A DNA stretch of 64,000 nt from Hemiscyllium ocellatum (taxonomy: Eukaryota), in NCBI RefSeq assembly GCF_020745735.1, contig NC_083438.1:24572068-24636067 (forward strand), in the 5' to 3' direction. Each line of letters starts with the position of its first letter. Positions within the stretch are counted from its first letter, which is position 1. Positions 1,709-32,233 of the stretch are shown here, in pieces. The notes beneath the pieces were generated by a model. The model was not told the origin of the DNA. It did not search any database and worked only from the letters and a program-made list of their open reading frames with translations. A program made the translations under genes and the position numbers.

Positions 1709-1771
1709 CTGGGATACCCCCAGCAGCAACAAATGGATAGTAAATTGCAGAAGAGATGGTGGCTCATGTAT
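1709..1771 (-). pseudogene. Dead exon-1 cassette psi1, unit 1
   Basis: ATG to ATA, 7-nt deletion, donor GT to AT; TATA-like run (1828-1840) and CCAAT (1909-1913) retained. Confidence 0.85.
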
Positions 1772-3122
1772 GTTGTTTCACAAATAATAATCTCTCTGCA
1801 ACTTCAAACCAATCAAAAGATGCAGCCATTATATATATTACAAAATGCCACACAAACACTATTAGGTTACAGCTTTCATAGTGCCAGTAAAATTCCTGTT
1901 TTACAGTGATTGGGAGCATTGTTTTCCTTCTATTCCTTGAAATGAGTTATCACAATGTCATCAAGCAAAGGAAATGAACCAAAAGGTTTCTTTGGAAAGA
2001 GGCAACCTATTTATTTCTTCACACTCTAGAGTAAACAAAAGTAAACTTTGCAACTGGCGTGATACGTTTTGAAAAAAATGTCTGTCCCCTGTTTATAAGA
2101 TCCTTGGTTAAGTCCACGCTCCACTGAGGAACACATTATCTTTCATCACTGTTACCAGTCCAAATGTATAGACTTGAACGCAGTTCTTCCGGTTATAGAA
2201 TGGAGTAAATAACAAGGACTTACGTATTACAAATGATAAAAGCAATTTGACAATTCAGATTTTGGAATGTTTGCCTTATTGACAACTCGCATTGCAGTTT
2301 CTGTACTCGTCATAATTCTTTAACGTTTCAACCAATCTGTGCCTCTTTTGGGGGGCAAATTAGGATCGGAAATATAGTTTCCTTTTCCAACTCTGAGGAT
2401 ATGACGCTCTCGATATAATAACAGAGCTTAAATGATCACGTGACGTTTGCTAAAGTTAAACTGAAAACATGCTTCCATGATCTTATGGCGTTTAATACAT
2501 TTTGAATGAGACTATGGGATGTGGAACGATGACGCCCCAAATTTGTGTTGATGGAGTGCTTTGGAACATAAGGACAGCATGCATGTACAGTAAATATCGA
2601 AACTGAGCAACTCTGGTCCTGATTGTTAAAGATTTGGAATACAAGCATCAATATGAGTTGTTGTGATCATGGCTTTACCTCATCAACACTTAAAATAACC
2701 CGCACAGGTGTACAATCCAATGGGAGCATGGATGCATTGACATAATTATTGTGAATGCAAGTATTGATGTCACTTGTGGAATGTATTTGGTGGAGAAGTT
2801 ACATTTTAGCTGAGAGATAGTGGATTGTCAGGAAACTAGAGTGGATCGTCTGAAGCACGAAGACATATGAGCAAAGGTGCCGTGATGAGAACTGATTGTT
2901 TGGCTCCAGAATGTAGAATTGCAATTTGTTTTGGGGCAACAGAGAATCTCAGAGTCAGAGTTGGTCAATGTCAAAATCTCTTTATCCAGAACATGCAGGT
3001 GAAATATCTAAACTCTTCAATCCTTCCCTTTCAAGGTCTTCCTCTTTCTCTCAACCGCCCCCTCTTGCTTTCTCTGAAAAATGGACAACACGCACAACAA
3101 CCTCATAAAGTGTGCTCACCAA

Positions 3123-4009
3123 CTAAGAATTAGTTACAATTTTACTCACTGGATATTTCACTATTTTCAGTAACTCCTGTCTGAATTTCGCCTGAGTTAC
3201 TGCATAAATGAATGTATTAGTGCAGCAACTCAAAAGCACTAGCATGTATCCACTTTCTTGAAGGATATATATGGGGTCATTGTAACCCGTATAAGAATAA
3301 GCATTAGCAACTCTAAAATACACACAATGGATTGCGAATGTCAACCATAATAACGGAAAATTGCCAGATATACTGAAGAGTAAAATTATAGACTTTCTTC
3401 TGTTCTTCATCTCGGGATCAAACTTATTTTCAGCTCTGGTGTTAACACAAAGTGCTTTACGAACTTTGCTCACCACTATTATATATCTCACAGTGAGAGT
3501 ATTCAGCACCAAAACGATAAAACATGGCAGAAATGGAGTTGCAATATGACCAAAATAAGAAAATGCGAGCCACAGGGGTGAAATATAAAAGATTGATCTT
3601 ATCTGGCAATACCAAGGAAAGTTGTTAATTATGTACATCGGTTCATACACAAAGTACCAGGGAATGTTCATAACACAACTCAGAGTGAGTACCAGAGTTG
3701 CAATTTGTTTTGTGCAATAGTGGGTCTTCAGTTTTTGAAAACAGATAGCTATAAACCGATCGAAAGTGAATGCCACAGTAAACCACACAGAGCAGTCTCT
3801 TGTTAAATAAACCAAGGCACTTTTGGTTCGACACAGCGGAGTCAGTGATAGATAATTTTTGGGAAAGTAAATGCCAATTATCCGATTGAGTATCACACTA
3901 GTAATGACAACTGAGAGGTCCGCTGCAGCCATAGCCATCAGATAGTAAGTGATAAATTTAGAAAGACCACACCTTCTCTGGGCCAAAATCGCAATTGCCA
4001 TGATGTTAC
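3123..4009 (-). CDS. GPR139/GPR142-like orphan class A GPCR, paralogue A copy 1, exon 2 (about 318 aa if spliced to 15596-15665); carries a 12-bp in-frame TM4 deletion
   Basis: 7TM pattern: GN in TM1, MAAADL in TM2, TM3 Cys (TPLC), FTFDRFIAIC, ECL2 PWYC, NTFIY in TM7. Acceptor ttttccaacag|GT AAC at 4010/4009 (phase 1); TAG at 3123-3125. Confidence 0.88.
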
Positions 4010-4958
4010 CTGTTGGAAAAGTAAACAGATGAGACACTTGATTAGCTAGATGCTAAGAAAAGTAAACATCCTTTTCAATCAATATGCATTACTTTCAGTG
4101 TATGTTTATTGCAGGCCTTACAGAATTGTGGAATTTGGGTAGGGTAGGCTTTCTCAGACACCAAGCGATGTGCAAACAATATTAGACAGACAATCTTCAA
4201 TGTCTGGGTATATATCCTACTTCAAATGGTGATCATATTCTTTTGACTGGAAGATCAACTATGTGCAAAGTGTTTCGATTCCAATTGCCCTGGTCTACAT
4301 TTCTTCTTTAATAATTTTCATGAAACCAAATAATCATGAATCACAGAAGGGCAGTAGTATAGAAGGGGACCATTCATCCAATTGTGCCTGCACCAATCCT
4401 CAAATGTACATGCTGACTTAGAGTCAGTCTCTTGTTTTCATTTCCTTGCCATAAACTTGCACAATGATTCTATTTTTATAATCATGTAGCACCATCCTTA
4501 CTGTGTCAATTGAAACTTCCTCCAACCCACTTTCAGACTTTGCATTCCAAGATAGTATGTTTGATGTTATTTCTGGAAGCTGTCTGTCGCTACATCACTG
4601 CTGTACTCATGTTATGCTGAAACACCTCCTGATAAATAAAAATGATTCCAAACTACATGCATGCAACCTGTGATTCTGAAAGTTGTTACAATATTTTTCT
4701 TAAAAATGTAATAATAAGAAAGTCATGAATTGTTAGAAGTCATAAGGAGAAGCATCAGAATTGGCCATGATTCTGGTAGATCCACGCCTTAGCATGAAAT
4801 TTGCAAACCTTTTTCATGATAGTATAGGTTTGGTACCACAAATCAACTTGAATAATTAACTTCTACATAGCTAGCACACTAAACACAAATGGGTTCGTTA
4901 AGACCCGACGTGCATTTCACTTGAAAAACATTTGAGAGTAATGAACTATTAAGATGGA

Positions 4959-5584
4959 GCATAGAACATGGAATAGAACATAGAAAAATACAGCGCAGTA
5001 CAGTCCCCTCGGCCCTCGATGTTGCGCCGATCCAAGCCCACCTAACCTACACTAGCCCACTTTCCTCTGTATGCCTATCCAATGCCCGTTTAAATGCCCA
5101 TAAAGAGGGAGAGTCCACCACTGTTACTGGCAGGGCATTCCATGAACTCACGACTTGTTGAGTACAGAACCTACCCCTAACATCTGTTCCATACCTACCA
5201 CCCCTTAATTTAAAGCTATGCCCCCTCGTAATATCTGACTCCATACATAGAAAAAGGTTCTCACTGTCAACCCTATCTAAACCCCTAATCATCTTGTACA
5301 CCTCTATCAAGTCACCCCTAAACCTTCTTTTCTCCAATGAAACCAGCCCCAAGTGCCTCAGCCTTTCCTCATACGATCTTCCTACCATACCAGGCAACAT
5401 CCTGGTAAACCTCGTCTGCACCCGTTCCAGTGCCTCCACATCCTTCCTATAGTATGGCGACCAAAACTGCACACAATACTCCAGATGCGGCTGCACCAGA
5501 GTCTTATACAACTGCAACATGACCTCAGGACTCCAGAACTCAATTTCTCTCCCAATAAAAGCCAGTACACCATATGCCTTCTTA
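4959..5584 (-). mobile_element. 5'-truncated young CR1/HER1-like LINE present only in unit 1
   Basis: ORF2 C-terminus (LVQPHLEYCVQFWSP) still open; (TTCTATG)-like tail; empty site near 35428. Confidence 0.92.
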
Positions 5585-6274
5585 TTTCCAGTAGTTGTCC
5601 AGTAGTTTTTAAGTTCATTCTAACTTGCAAGTTGGTTTTAGAATGAATTATTTTGCTGATGATAGTGCACACCTGATTATGGGAATTTCCAATAAACGCA
5701 GAAAATGTGAAGCAGGTTGAACAGCAGTGTCCATCGAGTCTGGCAATGCAAGTGAACCATTCAGAAAGTCTAACTATCTAAATGGGCTGAATTCAATTAA
5801 TTAGAATTTAACTTGTTTGTGGCTTTAGACATACATTTGAATGACAACAGGTATTGACTGGCCTGATGAAAATTGTGCGCAACACTGAATATTCCAATAT
5901 GCAATTGAAATCAAAATACTGCAGCTGTTGGAAATTTGAAACCAACTGGGAAAATGCAAGGGACATTCTGACCACTTGAGAACTAGATGCATTTTACAGA
6001 AATCGGAATGTTAACTCTGCTTCTCTCTCCTCAGTTGCCCTCAGACCAGCTGAGGTTTTCCAGTAGTTTGTATGTTCATTCTAACTTGCAATCTGGTTTT
6101 AGAATGAATTATTTTGCTGATGATAGTGCACACCTGATTATAATGGATTACTTTGTATATGATGACTTTCCTTTTGAAATTTTAAAGAATAAAGTCATAA
6201 TTTGCGAAACACATTATTAGACAGTGTGCAACTAAACATTATCAGTGACTTCAAAGGCCAAGAGCACACAGTTA

Positions 6275-6585
6275 GAGAGGCACAGCGGCTCAGTGGTTAG
6301 CAGCTGCCTCACAGTATCTGGGTTCCAGGTTCAAGTTCAACCTCGGCCAACAGTCTGACTGGAGTTTGCACTTCTCTCCGTGTCTGCGTGGGTTTTCTCC
6401 GGGTGCTCTGGTTTCCTCCTATAGTCCGCAGATGTGCAAGTCAGGTGAATTGGCAATGCTAAGTTGCCCATAGTGTTAGGTACATTAATCAGAGGGAGAT
6501 GGGTTCTGGGTGGATTGCTCTTCGGAGGGTCAGTGTGGTCTTGTTGGGCTGAAGGGCCTGTTTCCACACTGGAGGGAATCTAATT
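6275..6585 (+). mobile_element. HE1/V-SINE-like SINE (copy 35872-36176)
   Basis: Same head, core and tail motifs. Confidence 0.88.
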
Positions 6586-7289
6586 CAGTGGCACTGAATA
6601 ACAGATTTATGGAATAGGTGCCTTTGTGATTCAGCTGGTCAACAACCTGAGAAATATTGACTTCAGCGTGAGTCTTTAGTATGACCAAGAGTTGTTAAAG
6701 AAATGCATACCTATATTGAAGCAAATATTTAAAGCTTCATTTTGTCAATATTCAGAATGTTTCACAGATGTCAAACTGACAGCTAATATCAGCATTTAGA
6801 CAAGTTGGACATTGCAGATTAACAGGTTTACACAATAAATGCAATTGGAATTTAATGAAAATAACTTTCAAATTTGGGGTGTTGCTGTCTCGGAAATACG
6901 GATCAGATGGAATGAAACTTGGCTGGTTCAATGCCTTCCATTCATTGGTTTTCCTTCAACATGTAGTTGATGTTTATCATCCATAAGAAACTGAGTAAAC
7001 TTCTCTGACTGAAACATACTATCATTTTAAACGAGATTCTCATACCTCACTGACGTTTTGGAATGAAAATAAAGTGTCACTATTCACTGAGCCTCACAAA
7101 ATACAAGGGTTTCATTATTTTTCGCAAAATCACAGAATTTCCTTCTTTATTAACACAAGGTTGACAGGATATCTGACTGAGGTATCTGCACTTATCCATA
7201 ATGGCTATTTCTCTCAAATAAATTAGTTTCATCTACAAGTGAATAATTATGTACCTTCGACACATAATCCTACCTCTCCATTTATCTCT

Positions 7290-7455
7290 CCACCCTGGAG
7301 GCTCCCTGCCTCCATTCCTGATGAAGGGCTTTTGCCCGAAATGTTGATTTCTGATGAAGGGCTTTTGCCCTGCTCCTCGGATGCTGCCTGACCTGCTGTG
7401 CTTTTCCAGCACCACTCTGACCTAAACACTGGTTTCCAGCATCTGCAGTCCTCAA
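7290..7455 (+). repeat. PLE-associated repeat with minimal hammerhead-like core (copy ~36870-37015; related opposite-strand fragments 14832-14945 and 44340-44450)
   Basis: CTGATGA-A-GGGC-TTTT-GCCC-GAAA at 7318-7341. Confidence 0.65.
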
Positions 7456-7494
7456 TTTTGCTTATGTAACCCTATGAGTTCATGCCCAGACAGA

Positions 7495-7725
7495 AATATA
7501 GAAAATAGTCAGGCTTCAGTTATTTGGCTCTTCGAGATTCCTGCTCCATTCAACTCGATCATGGCCAGTTGTCCAACTCAGGAACTTTTGTTCTGCCCTC
7601 TGTATCAATGCACTTTTATCTCTTGAATTCGTAGAGCTATATATCAAAATCTTTCTTGAAAACAATTAATGTTTTGGCCTCAACCACTTTCCGTGGCAAT
7701 GAATTCCATAGACTCGTCACTCAAT
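7495..7725 (-). mobile_element. Old CR1-like LINE 3' end fragment (copy ~37065-37295); similar old fragments at ~4330-4550 and ~12040-12410
   Basis: Similar to the LINE tail at 24635-24870 (ggcaatgaattccatagactc). Confidence 0.6.
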
Positions 7726-8535
7726 GGTTCAATGCAAATACATGGTTTTATGAGTGACAGTTAAAACTAGAAATAAACTTCATTGTCCTTGTCCATTGCA
7801 TTCACTGAGATAAGCATTTGTAATGTGAGACCTTCTTTCTCCTCTATCTCTCTTGGACACATACTTTCCGTCTTGCAGGAAGGGACAAGGGATTGTTTCA
7901 CAACGTGTAAAGTGCCATGTTAAGAGCAACAGCTTATAACAAATAATCCAAACCGGTAAGTTGCCTTTCTTCAGGCTGTGGTTCTGTTTTAGTGCAGAGA
8001 ATGGGACAGCAGCTCTATTTCCAGCTGCCTGGCTATCTTATTCGTATCTAAAAGCTCTTCAGCTACTTGGAAGGAAATCACATAGCTTGCAGCCAGAAGC
8101 TGTTTGTCACTAACAGCACCGATTCTCCACAGGTCAATCAACTAATTTATGATGGCCATATCTCATTTTGTGCATATTTCATGCTGCTTTTGCATCTGCA
8201 ACTAAACCTGTCATATTATGAAACAATGAACATCGTAAACTAAATGCTGGTTAATTAAAACAATTGTTAGTTAAGTTGCAAATCATTCCACAATTAGTTT
8301 TAAATCAGACCTCTTCCTATTTCTGCCTGCAATCAAAAATAAGCAATTGCAATCGAACATTCTGTACATATTAAATATGGCATCGATATTACAAGAAATT
8401 GGAAGAGATAAAAACAGAGAGAAAACAAGTGAATGCGAACCAGGGAAAGAAAACCAGCCAAGTGACACAGAAGCAGAAAAGTGGAAGGGAAAAGGTACAG
8501 ATCTTGGCGGAAGTCGATCAAAGAATATTTCGAGT

Positions 8536-8760
8536 AAAAGCAAAATCTGCTGGAGAAAATCAACAGGTCAGCCAGCATCTGTAAGAAGTGAAACAAAATT
8601 AACATTCCAACTCAATGACCATTCTTCAGAATGGATCCGTTCTGATGAGAGATCACTGACCTGGAAAGCTACCTTTTTTTCTCTCTCTCGACAGATGATG
8701 CATGACCTGCAGAACTCAGCGTTTTCTGCTTTGTTTCAGATTTCCGGCATTTGCAGTTGT
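8536..8760. repeat. Degenerate inverted-repeat PLE-type element with hammerhead-like cores on both arms (copy 38110-38340)
   Basis: Centred on gaatggatccgttc; CTGATGA...GAAA at 8642-8667 (+) and CTGAAGA... on the minus arm. Confidence 0.6.
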
Positions 8761-9493
8761 TCACATTTATCTTAAAGGATGTCTGATATTATTGAAACAA
8801 ATACCTGTGAAATCAACTTGATTGATACATATAACTAGTGCATGAACGCTGGCATTGATAAAACTAAATCGTACATAGAATATTATTTTGGATTCATGTT
8901 ATACACTGTTTATAAAGTGCACACAAATAAAGGGTTAGGATTGAAAACATCAGAACAGTTCAGTTGGAGAGATCACAGTTGCTCGCTGAATTGGGAGAAT
9001 GTGAAGCGCATAGTATTTCTCACCAACATACAATACTGGAACACAGTCTGTGTACCCTTTGAAAGTTGAAAGACATATCGATAATCAAATCTGCAATTAA
9101 ATCTGTTTACCCAAATTGTCGATTGCAAAAAGAATTGCAGTTGCATGCTGAAGCAAGGAACAGCCAAATGTCCGCACAATGTTGTTTGATAAAAATAATA
9201 GAAGTTAGGCTTGTTTAGCTTCTGAGTCATTGCCACAGATTGCATGATGATTTTCCATGTGCATTAGTCCAAGTGAATCATATAGTAGAAATGTGGCAAA
9301 ATCAGCGTAACATGGGGCTCCTGTGGTGTCGGGGTGGTTCACTCGCTTCTTGGCCATGGCAGCTGAGGTTGAAGTCCCACTTATTCAGATGGTGTGTAAT
9401 CAGTTGCCTGAGCATTTTGGTTTAGAAACGTCGGTCAAACAAAAAAAACACAATGTGAATGCAACACAGGATTTAACTTACAAATCAATTTAC

Positions 9494-9563
9494 CTGGGAC
9501 ACCCACAGCAGCAAGAAATGGATCGTAAATTGCATATACCAAACCAAATGCTGGTTAATGCAT
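9494..9563 (-). pseudogene. Dead exon-1 cassette psi2 (ATG CAT TAA: stop at codon 3) between the intact cassette and exon 2A, copy 1
   Basis: Reads MH*PAFGLVYAIYDPFLAAVGVP; donor G|gtaaat still intact; TATA degraded. Confidence 0.88.
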
Positions 9564-11534
9564 GTTGTTTCAGAAATGATAACCTCTCTGCAACTTCAAA
9601 ACGATCAGATAGTGTAGTATTTAGAACACAAAATCCCACACGGATACCATTAGGAAACAGGTTTCGCAGAGTCAGTACCACTCCTCTTTAACAGTGATTG
9701 GGAGCATTGTTTTTATTCTATTCCTCTATATTAATCATCCGAGCACCATCAAGCCAAGGAAACGAGCAATCTTTCTTTGGAAAGATGCAACTTATTTGTA
9801 AATTCGCATTGCAGAGTTAACAAAAGTGAACGGTGCAAATGAAGCGGTGCATTTTGAAAACAAAATAAATTCTGTCCTCTGTTTATTTTATTCCGTATTT
9901 AAGTCAGCACTCCTGAAGGACACATTTACTTGCGCCACTATCACCAAGTCAAATGGTATAAATTTGATCAGCATTCTGTGTTTTATGGAGAGGAACAAAT
10001 AAACAGGGCTTACCTCATATAAATGATAAAACAAACAACTTGACAATTCAAATATTAGCATGTTTTTTCTTGTCTACAACTCACAGTATAGCTGGTGTGC
10101 TGCACATCTGTTTTAAAGGTTTCAACCAAGGAGCAATCTGCCTTTTCTGGACGTCACATTGCAGTTGCACATTGGTTCTGCTGTTCAAAATCTAAGGACC
10201 TTATAATCTCAATATAGCAACAGAAGGATCACGTTGCGTTTGCTAAATTTCAATTGGAATCATAATTCCAGAATCTTACAATGTTTAATATGTTTTGAAT
10301 TTGATGTCAGAATGTGGGAAGATGCATCGTAACAGTATCAATGTGCTCCGGCAACAACAAAAATCTTGTAAGTGTGGGGTAGCTATCAAAGAAAGATGTT
10401 TTTGCATTCAAACGCCCTTGACATGTTATCTTTCCCAAATCGATGGCAAAGTGAAGAGGAAATGCAGTGAATTTCCATAAAATCTGGCAGCCTCGGCATA
10501 AGTTTATATCAATATCAGCACAAACACTATGGGGACCACTATTTCTCTTCTATGTTTCTCATTTCTGCTGTGGATCTGTGTTTTGAATTTAGCTTAGAAA
10601 TTTGAAGAGAAGCTTGCTAAAAAAAAAGGACGGAACAAAATACTGCTGTTTACTGCGTGGAACTGACTTGGAAAGGTATTGCCGGTTAATTATTTGTCTG
10701 AAGAAAATGTAAACGATTCAGCACTTAGATGCTGTTAGGCTCAGGGTGTGGCAGCTGGTGGGTGTTGCATTGGTCTCTCAAGTGAGAACCGGTAATGGCC
10801 AACCAATAATAGTGAATGTTGAAAAAGAAAGACAAGAAAAGATGGAACTGGTTTCATCTGAATTACAAGCCGGAGGTGGATTTACCTCGGAAGTTGCCAG
10901 TTTGGGATGTACTTCTTTTTCTTGTTTTGTTTTCTCCTCTTATTCCCATCTATTGTCTTGTTGAAGGTTTCTAAAAAGAAACCCAATCTATTAGGAGGAA
11001 GTAAAACTCTCCACAATACCGTGGAAGTTGTTTGCATTGACCAGTGATGCCAGAATTTAAGTTCAATATTCAGCTTGCATGTTTGTTAAACATTTCACAA
11101 AGGCCTGGTATCCTTTGACGACAACGTTATGGAATTGGCAAATTATGATTATTTAATTTTCATTTTAAGTTATTCTTAACTGCATCCGTTTGTCTGTCTA
11201 TCTGTCTGTCGGTGTGTGAATGGGTGTTTATGATCCAAGAATGTTGCATTTATCTCAAAATTAATTAGATTGCCTTTGTCCAACGATAGTTACATTTTTC
11301 ATTATAGCTTGTTCCTGATTCTTCCAATTATATAGTTGGTCCTCTGGTTTGTAAAGTCTGGTTGGGAACAATTGTTGACGTCACCAAATGCTCTCATTTC
11401 ATTGTGTTGCAAATCCAGTGATTGCGAGGCTGAATTGATTTTTATTGTTATCCCTGTGCCCTATATTTCTACCTATTTATATATAAATTGAGAAACGAAA
11501 CTGTTGTATCAGAATATATGAAATGGTTTAATTT

Positions 11535-11826
11535 ATAGATTAGATTACTTACAGTGTGGAAACAGGCCCTTCGGCCTAACAAATCCACACCGACCCTCCA
11601 AAACGCAACCCACTCCCCTATCTTTAACCCTTCACCTGACGCTAGGGGCAATTTAGCATGGCCAAATCACCTCACCTGCACAGTGAGACAAAACCACAGC
11701 ACCCGGCGGAAACCCACGCAGACATGGGGTGAACGTGCAAACTCCACACAGACAGTCGCCTAAGCCGGGAATTGAACCCACGTTTACTGGCACTGTAAGG
11801 CAGCAGTGCTAACCACTGTGTCACCC
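11535..11826 (-). mobile_element. HE1/V-SINE-like SINE (copy 41097-41332, internally deleted)
   Basis: Reverse complement of the same family, starting with an AGATTAGATTAC tail. Confidence 0.88.
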
Positions 11827-12871
11827 ATCTGGGCCCCAAGAATGTTGAAGTTGCTACCTAGAGATATGCGAAACAAATTTGTCAGCTGAATCATCATCTG
11901 CACACATTGAAATAATGACCAGAGCATAATCTATTTAAATAATATAATAGGTGCTCGTATTTTATTGGAAAGTAGGAAGCCATTTAACTGATGTATTATA
12001 ACATACCATTGAACAAACACCAGATACTGTTTTGCCCACCCGGTGTTTTGCCCACAACAGTTTCTTGTGACTGAAAATTCCCCCGACTCACTAACCTCTG
12101 GATAGGAACATCATCCTCCTCCTGATCAGTCCTAAATGGCCTGCCCTACATCCTATGCTGTGAGCTTCTTGTTCTGGAATTTATAACCACAGAGGTTCTT
12201 TCTTTTTATCGGCTCTCTTTAATTATACTAGAAATTTATAGATTTCTATGAGATTTCTATGAGATCCTCCACTCATTCCTCCAAACTTCGATGAAGACAG
12301 TATTAACAGAGCCAATATTTCTTCATACATCAGGATTGACATTCCACGTCTCAGTCTGATAAACCTTCATTGTTCTCCTTCAAAGGTCAGTACATCCTTC
12401 CTCAAATACTCTGATGTATTGTTACAAATAATTAATGATGCTCATGCTGAAAGGACAAATAGTAGAGTGGTGGAGATGCTGAGGAAGGGAGTTCCAGAGC
12501 CGTGATCATCAACTATGGAGAATACGCTCATCAGCATTGCAACAAAAGAATTGCTCATTCGCAAATGTTAAAATAAGCGTCACGTAACTTTCCTGTTCCG
12601 ATATAGAGATGTAAAAGCTTTTATAGACCAAAGTGGATGGGAATTTTGCATATTCAAAACAAACTATCAGAAATTTAATTGTGACACCGTTCTCCAGCAC
12701 GCTTAACTGCAGTTACACATAATGAATAAATTGACTTCATGTGATTTAGGCTATGGACAAAGGAAATTTGGGTGAGATTAAGTCCCGTAATCGTGAAGGT
12801 CGCAGCCTGATGATACCAGCATTGAAACAGTGATACTTCACAGTAAAACATGGAAATTCAGCCATGACGGC

Positions 12872-13502
12872 TGTGATAATGCTGTTCTTTTAACAAGGTG
12901 ATGTTGTCCTTGGTTTCTTTCTCAGAGATCATAAAAGACACAGACTCTGAGAAGTCTAAGTTGAAGGGTTTTAGGGCCAATTTGATTACAGCTAATAGAT
13001 ACTGCCTTTTAAGGCAAAAAGCTTTTAAGTTAAAAAACAAACTTGTACAATGAAAAGGGAGTGGCCAGTACTTCCGACTCAGCTACTCACTGGTTCGGTT
13101 TTTAATTGTAACAGTCCTGTTGTGAAGCTGCTGTACCAAAAGAAGAAGGTACTGGCTGATACTCTCTCTCTGTCTGACATCTCTCCTGTATAGCCCTGTG
13201 TTTGACATTATATTTTGTACAAAATGGTGCTTGTGGGCATTGTTGCCAGCAGTTGAAACAGCGTTATTAATTTGGGGTAATGTGTTGGGCTTTTGGATCG
13301 TTTAAGTTATTCAGTATTCTGTTCACTTTTGTTTGTGTTTCATTTGGTCATCTTGGAAATAAATTCTGTACTGTTTAAAACTACGTGGTTTTTTCAACTG
13401 CATCCTTCCTGGAATATTCACGTTACTTAAAAGAATTAGCAAAGTTAGGGTCTGGGCTACTTTCTTCAAATGTTTTGAGGGGGGCTGGGTTGGTCCATAA
13501 CA
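12872..13502 (+). mobile_element. Candidate solo LTR in the A intron (copy 42388-42993)
   Basis: TGT...ACA termini, AATAAA near 13358, about 630 bp; target-site duplication imperfect (cggc/ctgc). Confidence 0.45.
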
Positions 13503-15665: not shown

Positions 15666-15720
15666 GTTCATTCAGATGTAATAATCTGTCAGCAACCACA
15701 AAACGATAGGCTGGTGAAAT

Positions 15721-18631: not shown

Positions 18632-19326
18632 CTTCCCAGACATACTCCCTGAATTGCTGTGCAAGTTGGCATGATGTCTCCTCAATGTAGAGGAGACCAC
18701 CTCGACAGCAGTGGATGCAGTAGATGAGGTAGGTGGATGAGCAGTATAATCTCTGCCAGATGTGAAAAGATCCTTTGGGTCCTTAGATGGAAGCGACGGG
18801 GACGGTGTGGGTGCAGGTTTTGCACCTTGTGTGGTGTCAAAAGAAGGTGGCAGGTATGGAGGGTGGTTTTGTGGAATGTGTGGAACTAACAAGGGAGTCA
18901 TGGAGGAAATGGTCTCTATGGAGCGCAGATATAGGTGGGATGTGATATACATCTTTAGTGGTGTGGTTTGACTGTAGGTGGTGGAAATCGAGGAGGATAC
19001 CGCACTGAATATGGAAATTAGTGGGATGGAAGGTTTAGAGCAGGGGGATTCTATTCTTGTTGTTGTTGAAGGGATGGGGTTCGAGGATGGAGGTGCAGGA
19101 AGTGGAGGAAATGCACTGGAGGACATTGTTGATCACGTGGGAGGGGAAACTGCAGTCCTTGAAGCAAGAGGGAATCTGGGATCTCCTGAAGTGGAATTGC
19201 TCCTCCTGGGAGCAGTTATGGCCGAAGTGGAGGTATTTGGAGGACTGGATGCATTCTTACAGAGGAGTTGGAGGAGGTGTAGTCACCGTCGTGGAGAGAG
19301 TCCGTGGACAATTATAGTGATCAGTT
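18632..19326 (-). mobile_element. Penelope-like element remnant: RT thumb, linker and GIY-YIG endonuclease (copy ~48436-49131)
   Basis: Degenerate TDS..DYTSS, NKNRIPL..TFHPTN, RDHSLHDSL, CKTC and IYCIHC..GLLYI.ET motifs. Confidence 0.85.
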
Positions 19327-19327
19327 G

Positions 19328-22300: not shown

Positions 22301-22500
22301 CAGCAGATGTAGCAGATGCAGGTACAGCAGATTCATTTAAGGTGCATCTGGACAGATACATAAGTAGGTGGGGAGAGCAGAGGGATACAGATGCTTAGGA
22401 ATTGAATGATTATTTTAGACAGTGGATTTGGATTGGCTCAGGCTTGGAGGGCCGAATGACCTATTCCTGGGCTGTAAACTTTCTTTGATCTTTATTCTTT
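19328..22500 (+). mobile_element. Degenerate CR1-clade LINE: ORF1 esterase end, APE endonuclease, RT and 3' tail (copy 49132-52340)
   Basis: CIYFNAR, MGDFNFP, YLDFRKAFDKV, SGVPQG, LADETK and PHLEYCVQFWSP fragments with stops and frameshifts; TTCTTT tail. Confidence 0.93.
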
Positions 22501-22627
22501 GTACACTACAAAGAGGCAGGCATAGCTGGCACTCATATGGGTGTTCGTGGCTACCTCTCTGGTCTGATGGAAGTGGCTGGATTCGAAGGAGAAATTGTTG
22601 AGGTTGAGGACTAGTTCTGCCAACCTG
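22501..22627 (-). mobile_element. Penelope-like RT fragment, the same element continuing on the far side of the CR1 (copy 52342-52468)
   Basis: RLAELVLNLNNFSFESSHFHQTREVA...SYA resembles the PLE RT GVAMG region. Confidence 0.8.
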
Positions 22628-23984
22628 TAGGTCACAGCTTACAGGACAGGTTGCAACATTGTGGCTGCCGGTCAGAGTTTACTGTAGCCTGACCAAAGTT
22701 GCCAGCATTTTTGATTGCATCTCTTAATTAATCTTCTTGCAATATCTGCTATTAGCCACCTGACCACGATGACATTGGATCAATGGTTCTCCTGTGTTGG
22801 AATTTTCCAATCAGGGCGGTGTTAACAGCGTTTCTCTGAATCATCTCAATTGTGCATTGAAACAATGACAAGGATGCAGCTTTGCAATGTTACAAATGTT
22901 GTGATGTTACTGACCACTCGAAAACTATTTCAAAGCGAACAATGACAAACTAAATAAATAATTTGCAGGTATTTCTTTCTCTTGTTTCACTTTGTCTCCA
23001 TCTTAAGCTATGTTGCAAATATCAGTATTTAAACCACACAACTGAATAAGCTTCATGATTTTCCTTGAGTAACCGGCAATTGTCACAAAATTGCCCAGTT
23101 CACTTTCTGTTCTGATGTTGCTAAATTTCTTCCAAGCACCTTTTCAGAGATTAACTATATTGCCTCTAGAATCCACAATAGAAAACTGAATGAATTTGAC
23201 TGTCATATTCATTTTCTTTCTGCTGAGTATATTTATTGTCGTCAAAATAACATGTTTCAAAATATTGGATTTGATATAAACTTATATCAAGTGTTTTGAA
23301 GATGTACTGCTTGCATGATACAACCAAGGACTTCTCCAGTTAGCACTGCAAACAGATTTTAACTGCTACTGTAGCATGCACTTAAAAAGTAAAGTGATGA
23401 AAACTAGTGAGCAAACATTTTGGGGAAAATTTAATTTTCTTAATATCAGCATGGAGATGTCCGTGCAGCAGCTGTATGAGGATGGCTTAGCAGTCTGTTT
23501 TCATGGAAACCATCAAGCAGATGTTATATCCTCGATTCCAAACACGGATAGAATCATGACTTGACTTGTTGGACATAATGTCTCCCGTAGTTATGTTTGA
23601 GTTATTAAATCATTGTCCAGCATGGTTGTTATCAGACTCTGCAATATGTTCAGCTGTTGCGTGATAGATCAAGAATCCATGAAGCCAAAAGTGACCTTAT
23701 GCTTGTGCATATTTGTTCTCCTTTGATGAACGTCCAGCAGTAAACCAGAAAATATTTTAACGTGTGGGATGATAAATGTCACATTACATTTCCCTGTACA
23801 GGTGCCAAACAATTACAATATTTAACCATGGAAAATGGTATGATGTTTAATAGGACAAAAAAAAACTCACTGAATTTCACATTGGCTCCCTAACTTGCCA
23901 CCTTCTGAAAACTATATGTCAGATGTGTGCTGGAGTAGTTGCCAATGCCCTGAATAGGTTCAAGGCGTTCAATAAATTTCTGCA

Positions 23985-25566
23985 TGGTAGACGAGTTAAC
24001 AAGGTTAGATCACATGGGATCGAGAGAGAACTTGGCACTTGGGTAGACGATTGGTTTGAAGGTAGGAGACAGCGGATTTCTTTTTGCATTGGAGGCCTGT
24101 GATTAGCGATGTACCAGAAGGAATGGAGCTGGGTCTACATTTCTTATCATTTATATAAATGATTTGGCTGTGAATGTGAGAAGTATGGTTAGTAAGATTA
24201 CAGATGAAATCAAAAGTTACTTTCGACGACAACAGGGCCATAATCAGATAGGCCAATTGACTGAGAAGAGGCAGGTGGAGTTTAATCTTGATAAATTTGA
24301 AATGTTACATTTTGGGAGGGCAAATCTGGTTGGGACTTATATGTTTAAAAAGATTGCCCTGGGGAGTGTTGCTGAAGTGCCGGATCATATTTCCTTGAAT
24401 GGGGAGATACAGGTCGAAAGGATAGTGAAGAAGGCATTTGGTCGGCTTACTTTTATTGATCAGTGCATTGAGTATAGGAGCTGGGAAGTCACTATGCGGG
24501 CAATTGCATTGGTTTGGCCTCTTTTTGGAATACTAGATTCAATTTTGGTCTTCCTATTGTAGGAAAAACGTTTTGAAACTTCAAAGGGTTCAGAAAAGAT
24601 TTGCAATGATGCTGCTAGGGTTGGAAGGTTTAAGACCATAAGACTATAAGACATAGGAGTGGAAGAAAGGCCATTCGGTCCATCGAGTCCACTCCGCCAT
24701 TCGATCATGGCTGATGTGCATTTCAACTCCACTTACCAGCATTCTTCCCGCAGCTCTTAATTCCTTGTGACATCAAGAATTTATCAATATCTGCCTTGAA
24801 GAAATTTAGCGTCCCGGCCTACACTGCACTCTGCGGCAATGAATTCCACAGCCCCAGCACTCTCTGGCTGAAGAAATGTCTCCGCATTTCTGTTCTAAAT
24901 TTACCTCCTCTAATTCTAAGCTGTGTACACAGGTCCCAGTCTCCTCGCATAACGGAAACGATTTCTCAGCCTCCACCCTTTCCAAGCCATGTATCATCTT
25001 GTAAGTTTTTATTAAATCTCCCCTTAATGTTCTAAACTCCAATGAATACAATCCCAGGATCCTCAGCCATTTCCCGTATGTTAGACCTACCATTCCAGGG
25101 ATCACCGTGTGAATCTCTGCTGGAGATTGAGCTATACGGAGAAACTGAACAGGTTAGGGCAATTTTCTCTGGAAGGTTGGAAGCCAAGGGGTGACCTTAT
25201 AGAAGTTTATATCATCATGAGGGGCATGGGTAGGGTGACTGGCCAATGTATCTTTCCCAGGGTAGGGGAGCCCTAAACTAGAGGACATGTGTTTATGTTG
25301 AGAAGGGAAAGGATTAAAAGGGACATAAGTGACAACCTTTTTAAATAGAGTGTGGTGCATTTTTGGAATTATTGCCTGGGGAAATGGTAGAGGTTGGTAC
25401 AAGTACAAAATGTAAGAGATAAATGGATGCATGCATTAATCGCAAGGGTGTAAAGGGATATTGGCCAAATGCTGACAAATGGGACAAAATTAATTTAGGG
25501 TACGTATTTAAAATACATGAGTTGTATCGAAGGTTGTATTTTCCATGTTAATGATCTGTATGACTG
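23985..25566 (+). mobile_element. Old CR1/HER1-like LINE 3' part (copy ~53820-55400)
   Basis: Degenerate RT/C-terminus: EFNLDKFEMLHFGR, IVKKAFG, IEYRSWEV. Confidence 0.85.
24635..25124 (-). mobile_element. Younger LINE 3' fragment nested antisense in the old LINE (copy ~54465-54958)
   Basis: (CATAAGA)n tail; LGLYSLEFR.LRGDLI; host LINE resumes after 25124. Confidence 0.85.
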
Positions 25567-26626
25567 AAACAATCTCGGTCTAAAGTCACCCAAGTAACAT
25601 GGCACCATTGAGGAAAAATATGTATGATTTATCGGCACTCCATATGACAGATTAATTAGACAAACCACAGTTCCCAAACCTCAGGAGGTTGGGTGGTAAA
25701 AAAAACCTGCACCTTCAACAAGAGGGACTTCAAAACCATTCAAGGCGTTGGGTCGTAAAAAAATTGCACCCTCAACAAGATGGACTCCACAACCATTGAA
25801 GGCTCCTTGGATAGCACCTTTCAAGGACCCGCCCTCCAATGCAAACAATCGTGCATGGGAACAACTGAAGCAAAGAAATTTAAAGCCATCCTAAAGTGGA
25901 AAGGATTGCCATTCCGATTGCTGAGGTTGAATCGAGAATTTTGATTGTTCCTACGCCACCCTTCCATCCAAGTCTCTTAATTGCATTGTATGATTATTCA
26001 AATTACATTATTGCAATAGTTCAAAAAGATTTTCAATGATACCTAATGCTTCCTGTCTTAAACTTGGGAAGCATGGTTACAGAACCACAGCACCTCTATT
26101 CACCAAGTAATACTCAAAGTCAATAATTGTGGCTGGATGTTGCATTCTTTGTTCAGTTCCACCTCAATATGATAATGCTTCAAATTCAGAAAGAAAAAAA
26201 GCTGTTTAATCTTGTAGGGCAGCGTGGTGCGGACTTCAGTTTTTGATTATATTAATATTATTTTAAAGATGAAAGAATTGCAGATTCTATAAGTCAGGAA
26301 CAAATACAGAAAATGCTGGAAAATCCGAGAAGGTCGAGCAGCATTCATGGAGAGTAATCAGAATGATTATTATGGGTCAATGTCCCGTCCTCAGTTCTAC
26401 CAGACTTGCTAAGTTTTTCCATTAATTTCTGTTTTATGTACCAAATAAATGTTCAGTGAGGGAATAAAAGCCTGAAGGCATGAGGCAAGAAAAATGAATT
26501 GAGCAAGTTACAGGAGCATACATTGTTATTTTTATTTTATGCCAGTCATGACAGCCTGTAACAAATTATCCTTATTCCTCACCTAAAATAAAAGGGGGTG
26601 CACAGTAACTTCATCAAATGTACTGA

Positions 26627-27543
26627 CTATCGACAGAAAATCAATTTGACAATTTCAACAAATTTACTCATTGGATATTTCACCATTTCCATGAGCTCCT
26701 GTCTGAATTTAGTCTGGGTCACTGCATAAATAAATGTATTTGTGCAGCAGCTCAAAAGCACAAGCATGTATCCAGTTTCTTGGAGGATATAAACGGGGTC
26801 ATTGTAGCCAGTGTAAGAATAGGCATTAACAATTCTATAATACATGTAATGGATTGTAAATATCAACCACAATAAGATAAAGTTGCCAGATATACTGAAG
26901 AGTAGAATTATTGACCGTCTCCTGTTCACCATCTCAGGATCAGGATTATTTTCAGATCTGGCATTAACACAAAGTTCTTTCCGAGCTTTGCTCACCACGA
27001 TTATATACCTCACAGTGAAAGCATTGAGCACCAAAACAACAAGAAATGGCAGAAAAGGAATTGTAATCTGGCCAAAATAAGAATATGTGATCCACACGAT
27101 TGAAGTATAAAAGCTTGATCTTATCCGGCAATACCAAGGCAAGTTGTTAATTATGTATAAAGGTTCAAATAAAAAGTAACAGGGAATGTTCTTCAAACAA
27201 CTAAGGGTAAACACCATCCCTACTACCGCCGCTGCTGTTTTCTGTGTACAAAATTTGGTCTTCAACTTGTGACAACAGATGGCTATAAAGCGATCTAAAG
27301 TAAATGCAACAGTAAACCATACAGAGCAGTCTCTTGTTATATAAACGAGGACACATTTTGTTCGACATACCGGAGTCAGCGATAGATAATTTCTGGGAAA
27401 GTAAATACCTATAATTCGATTGAGTATGACACTAGTGATAACAACTGATAGATCTGCTGCTGCCATCGCCATCAAGTAACAGATAATGCATTTCGAAAGG
27501 CCACATTTTCCCTGAGCAAGGATTGCAATCGCCAAAGTGTTAA
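26627..27543 (-). CDS. GPR139/GPR142-like GPCR paralogue B copy 1, exon 2 (328 aa spliced)
   Basis: Same motifs (MAAADL, TLDRFIAIC, PWYC, NTFIY); acceptor ctaaacag|TT AAC; TAG at 26627-26629; AATAAA at 26531-26536 on the minus strand. Confidence 0.92.
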
Positions 27544-28204
27544 CTGTTTAGAAACGAAAGTAAGTAAGAGGCCAAGAGAAAATAACAATTCGGTATCACC
27601 TAGAGATACTACTAGAAGTATTGAAGTCAACCATTTTGTTTTCACAATAGCTAATGCGCATAAATATCACTGAAGAACAGTGAATCCCAGTGAAAGCATG
27701 ATTTTTGTGATCAATAGCTTCAACCCACAAATCTGTTAATATTGCTTTATATACATTCATTTCTCAGTCAGCAATTCATGTTCGTGATCTAGCACCATTT
27801 CTGAACCAGAAAAGGTGAGAAAGGATACTTCCTTTCCAAAATGGATGCAAATGAAACAGAAATTTGTGAATGCATACAGTGAGGTGAGTGTTTCATTTTG
27901 ATTTTTGCTGAGTTACAAATCATCAACTGTCATGCTACAAGGTGAACCCACGTTCCCAAAACGTTAGCTGGCATTTAGTCCAGGGACATGACCATTGCAC
28001 TACTACCTGCCACCTGGATTTCCTTTACAGATTCGCAGAGGACACGTTTCCAATCATACTTTCTGCTAGAAGTCGGTAGTTGAAAAGCACTGCTTATAAA
28101 CTTGGATCAAATCATTGATATATTATTGACTATATAGCATTATACAAATCTCACATGCATACTCAACATGACTTGGCGGTGCCTGTGTTGGACTATGGTG
28201 AACA

Positions 28205-28379
28205 AAGTTAAAAATCACACAACACCTGGTTTATAATCCAAAGGGTTTATTTGGAAGCACTCATGTTTGGAGTGACTGTCCTTCATCAGATGGTTCCCTA
28301 ATGAAGGAGCTGCGTTCAAAATGCTAGTGTTTCCAAATAAGCCTGTTAGACTATAACTTGGTGTTTGAGATTTTTAACT
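28205..28379. repeat. Inverted-repeat (fold-back) element with degenerate hammerhead-like cores (copy 58051-58228)
   Basis: Arms agttaaaaatcacacaacacc...ccttcatcag and (c)taatgaagg...ggtgtttgagatttttaact. Confidence 0.7.
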
Positions 28380-28877
28380 AATTATCAATGTTAAGAGTCA
28401 TACAAAGTGGGCATTGCAGATTAAAACTACACATAGTAGCATAGTTTTGAACTGTGATATGAGCAACTTGCAAGGTTAATGAACAGATAAGGATTGGCAA
28501 ATCTTTGACACTAAATTGCATTAGTTAACTTATTTGTTTTCCCAGAAAATTGGCAATGCTTTCATGGTCATTATTAAACTTTAATTTTCAGATTATTGTT
28601 ACATTCCAATTCTGCCATCCACTCAGTCCGGGATTTGAACCCTGGTCTCTGATGAATAGACTAGTGATAATGCCAAAAGGTCATCGCCTCCCCTAATTTT
28701 GTTTGGCTTTATCAATGTGTCCTCCTCATTGTCCAAAAGTAGAAAGCATTTAATGAATCTGGCAGCAGTGAGAGAACGAGAAAGAAAACCAGACAAGTGA
28801 TGAAAAGCACATAAGCGAAAAATGGAGAAGAAATGTAACTATCATACCTGAGTCCATCAAGGAATTGTGTGGAACCT

Positions 28878-29032
28878 AAAGAGAAAATGCTGGAAAATCT
28901 CAGCCGGTCAGGCAGCATCTGTAAGGAGAGAAAAGAGCTGACATTTCGAGTCTAACTGACTTTTTATCAAAGCTCTTTTCTCTCCTTACAGATGTTGCCA
29001 GACCTGCTGAGATCTTCCAGCATGTTCTCTTT
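28878..29032. repeat. 62-bp-arm hairpin enclosing a hammerhead-like 31-nt loop, in the B intron (copy 58727-58881)
   Basis: Arms 28878-28939 and 28971-29032 with 5 mismatches. Confidence 0.9.
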
Positions 29033-29420
29033 TGGTTTTAGATTCCAGCATCCGCAGTAATTTGCTTTTATCAAGGATTGTGTGATATGTTTGAAAATAA
29101 TATGAAAGGTTAAAATGATTGACATATAAAATAATCATATAAATATGTAATGCTAAAGAAAATGTGCGCGATGTACAATATTTTTCTGGATTAATTTAAC
29201 ATTTGTTTTGAAATAGACGGAAGTCAAGCGTTAGCATGGAAAACACAACCAGAACACCCTTTGATCAGAATGATCTTTTATGCATCACCTCCCTAAAAGA
29301 GGACGCTAGATCAAAATTTGCGTTCTTTGGAGCTTTAACCTCTAAAAATAAAACAAAAACACTGTTTACCCGAGTCACTATTTATTTGAGAATGAAATTC
29401 ACTTTATTCGCAGAATCCCT

Positions 29421-29742
29421 ACCATTCAGCCCAACAGGTCCATACCAACCATTCAAAGAGTGACCCACCCAGACCCATTCCAAAACATTACTACTCTATG
29501 TTCACCCCTGACCATCGCACCTAACTTACACATCCTTGAACACTATGGGACAATTTACCATGGTCAACTCACCTACCTTGCACATCTTTGTGACTGTGGG
29601 AGGAAACTGAAGCACCCGGAGGGAACCCCGCAGACACGGGGAGAATATGCAAACACCACGCACACAGTCGCCTGAGGCTGGAATCAAACCTAGGTTGCTG
29701 GTGTTATGAGGCAGCAATGCTAACTACTGTACCTTCATGCCA
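29421..29742 (-). mobile_element. Older HE1/V-SINE-like SINE in the B intron (copy 59270-59608)
   Basis: Diverged reverse-complement match to the SINE core. Confidence 0.8.
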
Positions 29743-29896
29743 TCTACAATTTACTGCAGGACAGTTGAGAAAGTATATGTCAAGTAATTCACTGTAATTG
29801 AAATTACCCACATTTTAATGAAACCCGGCAGACGCTCAATAAGTCTAATGAGATCGTACCATGCAAATTTATACAATTCTCAAGATTGCAATTTAC

Positions 29897-29966
29897 CTGG
29901 GATACCCAGAACGGCAAGAATTGGGTAGTAAATTGCATACACCAGACCAGGTGGTGGCTCATGCAT
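29897..29966 (-). CDS. GPCR B copy 1 exon 1, MHEPPPGLVYAIYYPILAVLGIP(V)
   Basis: ATG...CCA G|gtaaat; phase 1; 2353-nt intron to 27543; ATATAAAG about 55 nt upstream. Confidence 0.9.
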
Positions 29967-30021
29967 ATTCAGTCAGAAGTGATAGTTTCTCAGCATTTCC
30001 AAACCAATTCGGTGGTGGCGT

Positions 30022-30110
30022 CTTTATATTGAGGTGAAAACCCCTCCGGGACTCCATTATGTAATGTATTTGCTTGTGTCAGGAACATTCATTGTTAACT
30101 ATTATTGGGA
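30022..30110 (-). promoter_or_regulatory. Putative core promoter of GPCR B: ATATAAAG and CCAAT box (copy 2 ~59886-59974)
   Basis: ATATAAAG at 30022-30029; AATGCTCCCAAT block at 30104-30115 also found at 1909 and 9697. Confidence 0.6.
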
Positions 30111-30132
30111 GCATTGCTTTCATCTTTCTCCT

Positions 30133-30197
30133 GAATTGAACTCGGCTCTCTAGCGCTGTGAGGCAGCAGTGCTAACCACTGTGCCACCGTGCCGCCC
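30133..30197 (-). mobile_element. SINE 5' head fragment next to the B promoter (copy 59997-60061)
   Basis: gctgtgaggcagcagtgctaaccactgtgccaccgtgccgccc is the reverse complement of the SINE tRNA head. Confidence 0.85.
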
Positions 30198-32170
30198 ACA
30201 GTGTGGGAATTGGTTGTGTAACTTCAGGTCGTCATCGGCAAGATTAATGTTGGAACTGCGAAATAGACTCAGATCACAAGCTCTTAGTTCAAACGAAATC
30301 AGTAGTGTACCTCAAATGCTGCTTCACAGAGGAATGCCCACTCTGCCGGTATGTCCATTTCCTTCCCTGTCAGAGCCTATTTCTCTGCCTTTTCCTATTT
30401 TCCTAAATCTTTTCTGCAAACGGTAATGGACATATTTTGGTGGCAAAACCACCAATGATCACTGACTCATCCCATTAAACATCAAACGGAATTGCCAACT
30501 GAAGAGAGGAGCAATTGCACAATGGATTCGAATTGTTTCCTTTCTCAATTTCATGCTTCTTTTGAGTTACCACAGAGTCTAGGTACACCATTGGAGTTTC
30601 TGGCAAGATGACCATGTAGTAGGGCATCTGAGCCTGAGGCTTGCTCTCTTCATCTGTTGTTTTAAAATTTTCTCTTCTCTTCTTTCTCTTTTTTTTCTTC
30701 TTTGCTTCATCATCCATTCTACTTAGGTCTTGTTGAAGAGCTCAGTCATGACCATGTCATCGGAGGTAGCGAATCAGCCTAGCAGAGATGTGAATGAGCT
30801 CTGCAGCGTGGACTTGAGTGCGTCATGCGCGGGTCGAGTGCGGACTCGTTGTGACAGTGTCGGAGGTGAGTTTGTGTCCTTGGCGGTATCTCCATCGACA
30901 ACGAGGCCCGCGCTCCAACTCAATGCTAGTGCAGCAGAAGCCAGCTTGTGTGCCCGGCAGAGTCTGCATCCAATGCAGATTCACAGAGGTGATGGCAACA
31001 AGCTTCAACCCAGAAGAAAACCCGGGAGAATCAGCAGCAGCTGTATCAGCGAGTTGGGCAGGAAGTAGATTTATGACAAAAATGGAATTGAGTTTGGACC
31101 TTCATAGTACACGGTAGCATCGGTGACTTCTGCAATGGCGAGGTCCATCGAGGATGTTGTGATATTACTGAAAAAGTATCTATCAAGAAAGCATTATTGG
31201 CATATAAAATTATTTTTATCAAGATGCACATGCACGTATTGATGAAATTACATAATTGAAATTATATGTTTTTTTTATTTGCGTTATATTTTGTTCATGG
31301 GGTAGTACGGTGGTACTGTGGTTAGCACTGCTGCCTCACAGCTCCAGAGACCCGGGCTCAATTCTCGCCTCAAGAAACTGTCTGTGTGGAGTTTGCACAT
31401 TCTCCCTGTGTCCGCATGGGTTTCCTCCCACAGTCTAAAAATGTGTAGGTTTGGTGAATTGGCCAGGCTAGAATTGCCCGTAGTGTTAGGTGAAGGGGTA
31501 AACGTAGGGGAATGGGTCGGGGTGGATTGCTCTTCGGAAGGTTGGTGTGGACTTGTTCGGCCTGTAAGTAATCTAATCTAAAATTAAATGCACAGCAATA
31601 AAGGTTTAGGATGGAAAACAAGTCAAGAGTAAACTTGGATCACAATTGCTCGCTGATGTGGGGAGAATGTGATGTGTACAATTTCTCATCTCCACACATC
31701 AGGTCACTGGATCACAATCTGTACTCTTTGGAAATTTGAAACAACGCAGGTCAATATTCAAATCTGTAAATAAATCTGTTTAACCAAATTGGCAGTTGAA
31801 ATCATTTTGGGGAATGGGTTTGAAGAAGAAAACAGTTACATGTTGTGGGAAAAAATATCAACATTTTCTTGAGCTATCAAATGAGATACATACCGTGCAG
31901 CATGCTTCTTTAGCTACTGAGTCAGTACAACGGATTGTGTAATGCTTTACAATCTGCATTAAAGCAGATGAATATTGCTTGTAGTTAAAGCAGTGTAACA
32001 CGAGACTCCTGGAGTGTAATGGAATCACTTATTGTCACTGCGAGCCGAGTTTGAAGTCCCACTTATTCAGGCTGTAATAATGTGTCTGAGCAAGTTTTAT
32101 TTTAAATATATGTTTTTACAAAAGCAATATAATAGCAAAACAAGATTTTGACTGGCAACATTCTAACTAT

Positions 32171-32233
32171 CTGGGATACCCCCAGCAGCAACAAATTGAT
32201 AGTAAATTGCAGAAGAGATGGTGGCTCATGTAT
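32171..32233 (-). pseudogene. Dead exon-1 cassette psi1, unit 2
   Basis: Same three lesions as 1709-1771. Confidence 0.85.

Follow-up and report, generated by a model that had tools for sequence, protein, structure and literature searches.

In the UGT1A locus and in the clustered protocadherins, long first exons that encode the variable domain, most of them intact and used, join shared constant exons. Tandem receptor arrays that evolve by birth and death consist of paralogues on one strand, multiplied by block duplication and interspersed with dead or partly lost members carrying independent lesions; partial-gene relics, and chimeric genes that arise through deletion or unequal crossing-over, accompany them. 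In human olfactory receptor genes, the coding exon can be driven from foreign or shared upstream 5′ exons, giving chimeric transcripts in which one exon contains the receptor open reading frame (ORF) and the exons before it either do not code or are out of frame (PMC3566163). These systems are the closest described counterparts of the locus considered here, a stretch of 64,000 nt from the shark Hemiscyllium ocellatum (contig NC_083438.1, positions 24,572,068 to 24,636,067; the whole of this stretch is referred to as the window), in which GPR139-like receptor genes are accompanied by nine copies of a cassette made up of a promoter, a 70-nt coding first exon (exon 1) and the start of an intron.

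The extra cassettes are best explained, with a probability of roughly 0.7, as relics of birth and death in a tandem array of two-exon receptor genes, and not as parts of a regulated variable-first-exon system. The one-strand layout, the block duplication and the disabled members of birth-and-death arrays recur at this locus, and orphan pieces are found both ways, as first exons in the window and as an exon-2 relic in the skate Amblyraja radiata; what differs is that the relics of the window are promoter and first-exon cassettes rather than whole pseudogenes, and that one of them has seemingly been re-used by a neighbouring paralogue. The olfactory receptor chimeras, in which a receptor exon is likewise driven by the promoter and exon of a neighbouring unit, offer a closer analogy than UGT1A or the protocadherins, although at this locus both the start codon and half of transmembrane segment (TM) 1 have to come, in frame, from the captured exon. 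The first-pass annotation of this DNA had loosely likened the cassettes to the variable first exons of UGT1 and the protocadherins, and the two do share an array of first exons that possess a promoter and a donor apiece but no acceptor, upstream of an exon of the same phase. The comparison fails on other counts: exon 1 is short and encodes 23 conserved residues, half of the cassettes are dead, the full receptor body lies in a terminal and variable exon 2, and the two exons are paired one to one in other species.

A duplicated block of two-exon receptor genes

Five long minus-strand ORFs (3123–4037, 26627–27535, 33579–34505, 56456–57367 and 63472–63999, the last cut by the window end) encode bodies of rhodopsin-class seven-transmembrane (7TM) receptors, with Pfam 7tm_1 matches at E 3e-12 and 5e-16. 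A protein search returned 2015 matches at E ≤ 1e-10, the best 120 of which all come from sharks, rays and skates, reach up to 77% identity and are mostly named ‘probable G-protein coupled receptor 139’ in the source databases. GPR139 itself is the best relative of solved structure (E 2.7e-6; structures 7vug and 9m42), yet the similarity is distant, and the genes are two-exon members of a GPR139-like family of G-protein coupled receptors that has undergone a large expansion in cartilaginous fishes. Literature searches on this receptor family in cartilaginous fishes found no relevant paper.

Full-length homologues start with MHEPxxGxVYAIYYPxLAAxGxPxN, the peptide encoded by the 70-nt module, and its 23 residues are near-invariant across the family. 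Exon 2, which starts with xNxxAIxIL and is joined in phase 1 to the canonical exon-1 peptide, provides nearly the whole 7TM body together with the divergence, the two exon-2 types of the window (2A of gene A and 2B of gene B) being 75% identical in protein. Acceptors at 4009, 34477, 27543 and 57372 all complete the split codon in phase 1, yielding proteins of 318–328 residues. The first-pass annotation took this common phase to mean that any exon 1 could be spliced in frame to any downstream exon 2, and the intact donors and acceptors do join in phase 1; however, the same exon-1/exon-2 split occurs in every fetched skate and shark homologue, and since the intron position is inherited family-wide, the compatibility is not special to this locus.

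The window, which has no N runs, is spanned by a block of ~30 kb arranged in tandem and present in 2.1 copies. BLAST matches of 91–94% identity pair 1–4958 with 30496–35428, 6085–17519 with 35707–47005, 17516–34107 with 47337–64000, and 1–3651 with 60365–64000, and the global alignment of unit 1 with unit 2 gives 94.8% ungapped identity with 105 indel events. A 725-nt insertion (4959–5683), consisting of a CR1-like reverse-transcriptase fragment, is confined to unit 1, and a 335-nt insertion (47005–47339) to unit 2. Because the units have diverged by ~5% and carry such insertions of their own, they are real paralogues rather than an assembly duplicate, and an assembly artefact as their source is ruled out.

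A profile built from ~240 nt of promoter and exon 1 has exactly nine matches in the window by nhmmer, all on the minus strand and at E 1e-69 to 1e-78, the next-best match to the core profile having E > 1; a tblastn search with the exon-1 peptide recovers the same nine modules, and every one of the nine positions at which the first-pass annotation had placed a module bears one. Its outline of the layout is borne out as well. Read in the direction of transcription, the elements follow one another as C (intact), psi2, exon 2A, psi1, D (intact) and exon 2B. The modules are preceded by a TATA box (TATATAAAG) and a CCAAT motif, and the homology at the start of the intron, which had been put at ~0.5–1 kb, runs collinearly for 0.6–1.1 kb in all four cassette types (C, D, psi1 and psi2). 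All types lie on the minus strand with a TATA-containing promoter block, C and psi2 upstream of exon 2A and psi1 and D upstream of exon 2B. The nine modules are four independent cassettes multiplied by the ~30-kb tandem block duplication. A count of four cassettes per two exon 2s is thus right, but because of the block duplication this ratio represents one historical arrangement copied and not a recurring design.

Intact and disabled cassettes

The four intact copies of exon 1 (15596, 45102, 29897 and 59761) run from ATG to CCAG, followed by GTAA at the donor, and encode MHEPP(S/P)GL(V/M)YAIYYPILA(AV/VL)GIP plus one base. C and D differ at 7 of the 70 positions, of which at least three are, by inspection, silent third-codon positions, and both encode the canonical family peptide. 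The other two types are disabled. All three copies of psi1 have the first ATG changed to ATA, a 7-nt deletion and the donor GT changed to AT, with the TATA box retained, and both copies of psi2 have a TAA at codon 3 and an eroded TATA box, with an extra 4-nt deletion there in unit 1. Since the disabling lesions are common within a type and differ between the types, psi1 and psi2 would each have died once, independently, before the block duplication.

Debris of lost genes had been mentioned in the first-pass annotation as the other possible nature of the extra cassettes, and for psi1 and psi2 this is the description that fits: their lesions are independent, no partner exon 2 was found for them, psi2 diverges between units at background rate (5.9% vs 5.4%, the 59th percentile of non-exonic windows), and the psi1 exon of unit 3 is 11–13% diverged from the other two copies.

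Some 90–150 nt before each ATG, upstream of the TATA box, lies a promoter block with TAAT(T/G)G-like and TCCCnnGGGA-like motifs, which resemble the homeodomain and O/E sites of olfactory receptor promoters. The block can be aligned among this shark, the zebra shark and skates (L005:6055–6284, L004:2237–2465, L006:9918–10074).

It seems unlikely that the dead cassettes keep a non-coding role, in which psi1 would provide gene B with an upstream promoter or enhancer and psi2 would act inside the intron of gene A as a poison or decoy exon. The psi1 promoter block, besides its TATA box, shows pairwise divergence of 2.9–5.1% among the three units against 6.2–9.2% in its flanks (Poisson test, unit 1 vs unit 2, p 0.057), and psi2 has a GT donor and a possible upstream AG. 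Measured against the non-exonic windows, however, the psi1 promoter with its unit divergence of 2.9% stands at the 17th percentile, and psi2 falls above the middle of the distribution; moreover, the O/E-like part of the promoter (TCCC..GGGA) is degraded in psi1, whose unit 3 exon has drifted as described above.

Origin of the cassettes and the first exon of gene A

In a maximum-likelihood tree built from the nine cassettes, psi1 and psi2 separate from C and D with support of 100/100. Psi1 and psi2 can be aligned over ~1.4 kb (−830 to +585, 67% identity), and C and D from −225 to +68 (73%) as well as in pieces of intron and upstream sequence. The sisters psi1 and psi2 flank exon 2A, with C and D outside. 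A simple partial tandem duplication in place was rejected, as it would make sisters of C and psi2 and of psi1 and D, and the cassettes that are sisters in the tree are not adjacent. The pairing seen agrees with duplication of whole genes, two of which later lost their downstream half, and not with local promoter duplication, so that deletion rather than partial duplication would have produced the orphans. Remnants of the lost exon 2s were sought across the window by tblastn (E up to 10) and with an nhmmer exon-2 profile, and only the five known exon 2s were found; the best other candidate, a 27-residue tblastn match at 43482–43402 (E 1.2) lacking a counterpart in unit 1, is not credible. If C and psi1 once had an exon 2 of their own, its removal would appear to have been complete.

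Both exon 2 types have accumulated an excess of synonymous change between units 1 and 2. The ratio of non-synonymous to synonymous rates (dN/dS) is 0.24 for exon 2B (p 0.004 for the excess) and 0.25 for exon 2A, with 10 synonymous and 9 non-synonymous differences (p 0.003). Around the latter exon, 2680–3700 and 33140–34170 differ by 8 mismatches per ~1 kb vs the background of 5.4%, and this low-divergence tract, covering the 3′ two-thirds of exon 2A and ~440 nt of the 3′ untranslated region (UTR), points to gene conversion or strong constraint. Because the tract covers the rest of exon 2A, the selection test was repeated on the diverged 5′ third alone, where 10 synonymous and 5 non-synonymous differences (dN/dS 0.15; proportion of synonymous differences, pS, 0.138) again indicate an excess of synonymous change (p 4e-4). 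The two exon 2 types together show a single indel, an in-frame deletion of 12 nt, against 6.6 expected at the background rate (p 0.011). Exon 2A appears, then, to have been under purifying selection while psi2 already bore its stop. In the C-terminal 175 codons, the exon 2A of unit 3 has 8 non-synonymous and no synonymous differences against both other copies, an odd pattern though not significant by itself (p about 0.15). Compared with unit 2, the 12-nt deletion, at ~3690 in unit 1, costs predicted TM4 four residues, VVGM.

Upstream of the 2A acceptor there is no ATG that extends the frame, a start at a Met inside exon 2A would remove most of TM1, and the only intact, in-frame, donor-bearing first exon upstream of 2A within the unit is C. 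As exon 2A is under selection, psi2 carries a stop and C is the sole intact first exon upstream, gene A most likely splices C to exon 2A; the intron, 11,586 nt long in unit 1 and 10,624 nt in unit 2, would enclose the dead psi2. This would probably amount to one fixed first-exon swap in gene A. Of the promoter swapping that the first-pass annotation ascribed to the cassettes, such a single historical replacement of the first exon of 2A is what is left. An attempt to identify the native first exon of 2A through orthology was uninformative, homologues from other species being equidistant from 2A and 2B.

The course of events most consistent with these data would begin with four ancestral gene copies, each composed of a promoter, the 70-nt coding exon 1, at least 1 kb of intron and an exon 2. 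Two copies would have lost everything from mid-intron through exon 2, leaving C and psi1 as orphans. Psi1 would then have decayed through loss of its first ATG, the 7-nt deletion and loss of its donor, and psi2, the nearest and probably the native partner of exon 2A, through the codon-3 stop and erosion of its TATA box. D would still serve exon 2B over its 2.35-kb intron, and the orphan C, with ATG, frame and donor intact, would be joined to exon 2A 11.6 kb away, past the dead psi2, so that gene A may be regarded as a putative chimera that combines the promoter and exon 1 of one paralogue with the exon 2 of another. The whole 30-kb arrangement would later have been copied in tandem at least twice, which would be why nine modules are seen.

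Several observations weigh against this reconstruction. Homology between the introns of the paralogues fades beyond ~+1.1 kb in all cassettes, which makes the proposed deletion breakpoints unmappable. The presumed intron of 11.6 kb is two to five times as long as the 2–5.6 kb usual for the family in the fetched loci. It would not be improbable for C to have escaped damage by chance from the block duplication onwards, and the gene conversion suspected around exon 2A raises the possibility that the stop shared by the psi2 copies was copied between units and not inherited. The promoters of C and D are 97.9% and 98.3% identical between units vs 94.6% for the non-exonic background, a conservation significant in a Poisson test (p 0.013 and 0.005), but divergence varies greatly from place to place in the block, and ranked empirically among non-exonic windows the two stand only at the 8th to 13th percentile; promoter conservation was set aside as evidence of use. 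Finally, searches of sequencing runs with 5.7 kb including D, psi1 and exon 2B, and with exon 2A alone, found no RNA run containing the locus. The runs that match it are of unrecorded kind and contain intron as well as exon, so that they are probably genomic DNA, and hardly any of the query words occur in two small runs presumed to be RNA.

This lack of an RNA run with any junction would also suit a gene A that is dying, its exon 2A left without a usable first exon, C a mere orphan and the ORFs persisting for want of time; so would the TM4 deletion in unit 1 and the purely non-synonymous change in the C-terminal half of unit 3. Such a fate is nonetheless decidedly unlikely, given the synonymous excess that exon 2A has accumulated since the block duplication, both overall and in its 5′ third, the absence of a frameshift from all three copies and the conservation of the 3′ UTR.

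How the two exons are usually arranged can be judged from 141 kb around homologues in three other species, a small sample comprising four loci of Leucoraja erinacea, one of Amblyraja radiata and one of Stegostoma tigrinum. Every exon 1 in these sequences has an exon 2 located 1.9–5.6 kb downstream or else runs off the locus, and no orphan exon 1 was found among them. The A. radiata locus (L006) does contain a fragmentary exon-2 pseudogene (15678–15848 and 17700–17798) without an exon 1 nearby, the mirror image of the orphans in the window. In the loci sampled, one-to-one pairing would thus appear to be the norm, and relics of either half occur. As to annotated homologues, a strict pattern match finds 78 of the best 120 models without the canonical first-exon motif; some of these deviate by one residue, while in others the model begins within exon 2 or its N-terminus is unrelated. 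Truncated annotation is common in the family, but rarer than this count implies. One S. tigrinum model (P0094, 298 aa) consists of exon 2 only (L005:10001–10897), an intact canonical exon 1 located 3.7 kb upstream (L005:6207–6275) having been missed.

A bolder reading, to which we give little credence, would make orphan cassettes a working currency of this very large receptor family of sharks, genes that have lost their own first exon being re-driven by a neighbour's cassette and some ‘dead’ cassettes still firing as alternative promoters. If this were true, promoter choice, and hence the set of expressing cells, would be reshuffled by deletion and splicing and not by promoter mutation, and the capture of C by exon 2A would be the first documented case. 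Least tenable, and highly improbable, is a regulated architecture in which each exon 2 is contested by several cassettes, or cassettes act across gene boundaries, as alternative promoters in the manner of UGT1A and the protocadherins: each exon 2 is indeed preceded by two cassettes, with one strand and phase 1 throughout, a consensus donor survives in psi2 and a TATA box in psi1, and none of the nine cassettes lacks the family-wide promoter block, but one cassette of each pair cannot encode the N-terminus (psi2 for its stop, psi1 for its frameshift and missing donor), psi2 drifts at background rate with its TATA box eroded, diversity resides in exon 2, opposite to the situation in UGT1A and the protocadherins, a transcript joining D to exon 2A, such as the 29897-to-4009 junction suggested in the first-pass annotation, must pass the terminal exon 2B and its AATAAA signals, and in the three other species the exons are paired one to one.

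Neighbouring features and meaning for the receptor family

Coordinates of the cassettes, exons, introns and repeats of the window are collected in the table.

Table. Features of the window, numbered from its first nucleotide
Feature	Position	Strand	Description
Cassette C, unit 1	15587–15835	−	Core promoter and intact exon 1; coding 15596–15665, ATG at 15665, donor GT 15595–15594; probable working first exon of gene A
Cassette C, unit 2	45093–45341	−	Intact; exon 45102–45171
Cassette D, unit 1	29888–30135	−	Core promoter and intact exon 1 (29897–29966); first exon of gene B
Cassette D, unit 2	59752–59999	−	Intact; exon 59761–59830, identical to unit 1
Cassette psi2, unit 1	9485–9730	−	Dead exon 9494–9563; codon 3 TAA, TATA degraded with 4-nt deletion, GT donor kept; inside putative gene A intron
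Cassette psi2, unit 2	39056–39305	−	Exon at 39065; ATG changed to GTG; TAA at codon 3 common to unit 1
Cassette psi1, unit 1	1700–1943	−	Dead exon 1709–1771; ~1.35 kb downstream of exon 2A stop
Cassette psi1, unit 2	32162–32408	−	Exon at 32171; same three lesions; 2.2 kb upstream of D of unit 1
Cassette psi1, unit 3	62057–62300	−	Exon at 62066; same lesions; exon 11–13% diverged from other two copies
Exon 2A, unit 1	3123–4009	−	7TM exon of gene A; phase-1 acceptor 4009, stop 3123–3125, 12-nt in-frame deletion near 3690
Exon 2A, unit 2	33579–34477	−	7TM coding exon
Exon 2A, unit 3	63472–64000	−	3′ part only, cut by window end
Putative gene A intron	4010–15595	−	11,586 nt, from C donor to 2A acceptor; contains psi2, SINE-like repeat, LINE fragment
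Exon 2B, unit 1	26627–27543	−	7TM coding exon of gene B
Exon 2B, unit 2	56456–57372	−	7TM coding exon
Gene B intron	27544–29896	−	2,353 nt
SINE-like repeat copies	806–1106, 6282–6549, 11527–11842, 29511–29730, 31307–31561, 35873–36175, 47019–47332, 61169–61470	both	
Palindromic element	28872–29058 (D intron), 14847–14995, 8536–8593, 7345–7449, 6003–6090		
SINE, short interspersed nuclear element; LINE, long interspersed nuclear element.

Copies of the SINE-like repeat, a dispersed element of ~300 nt found in both orientations, are 70–87% identical, and one of them interrupts the intron remnant of psi1. The short palindromic element is common to the introns of D, C and psi2, and the putative intron of gene A has more copies of it. 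The intergenic stretches at 18000–22000 and 48000–52000 stand out by a strong GC skew of about +0.3; within these is an ORF of 186–193 aa rich in Ser, Pro and Thr and without a Pfam match (18545–19126 and 48372–48932). CR1/L2-like reverse-transcriptase fragments at 21202–21648, 24806–25105 and 5047–5520 were noted along with this ORF. An Rfam scan of the whole window at the gathering threshold and a tRNA scan gave no match.

The locus is an instance of ordinary gene-family turnover and reveals no new regulatory architecture. For annotation it carries a warning, namely that the true first exon of a receptor gene may be found over 10 kb away, the nearest one upstream being dead. If the splice from C to exon 2A is real, gene A would provide a clean natural swap of a coding first exon and its promoter between paralogues, and the arrangement as a whole illustrates how a fast-growing receptor family of cartilaginous fishes sheds and may re-use parts of its genes.

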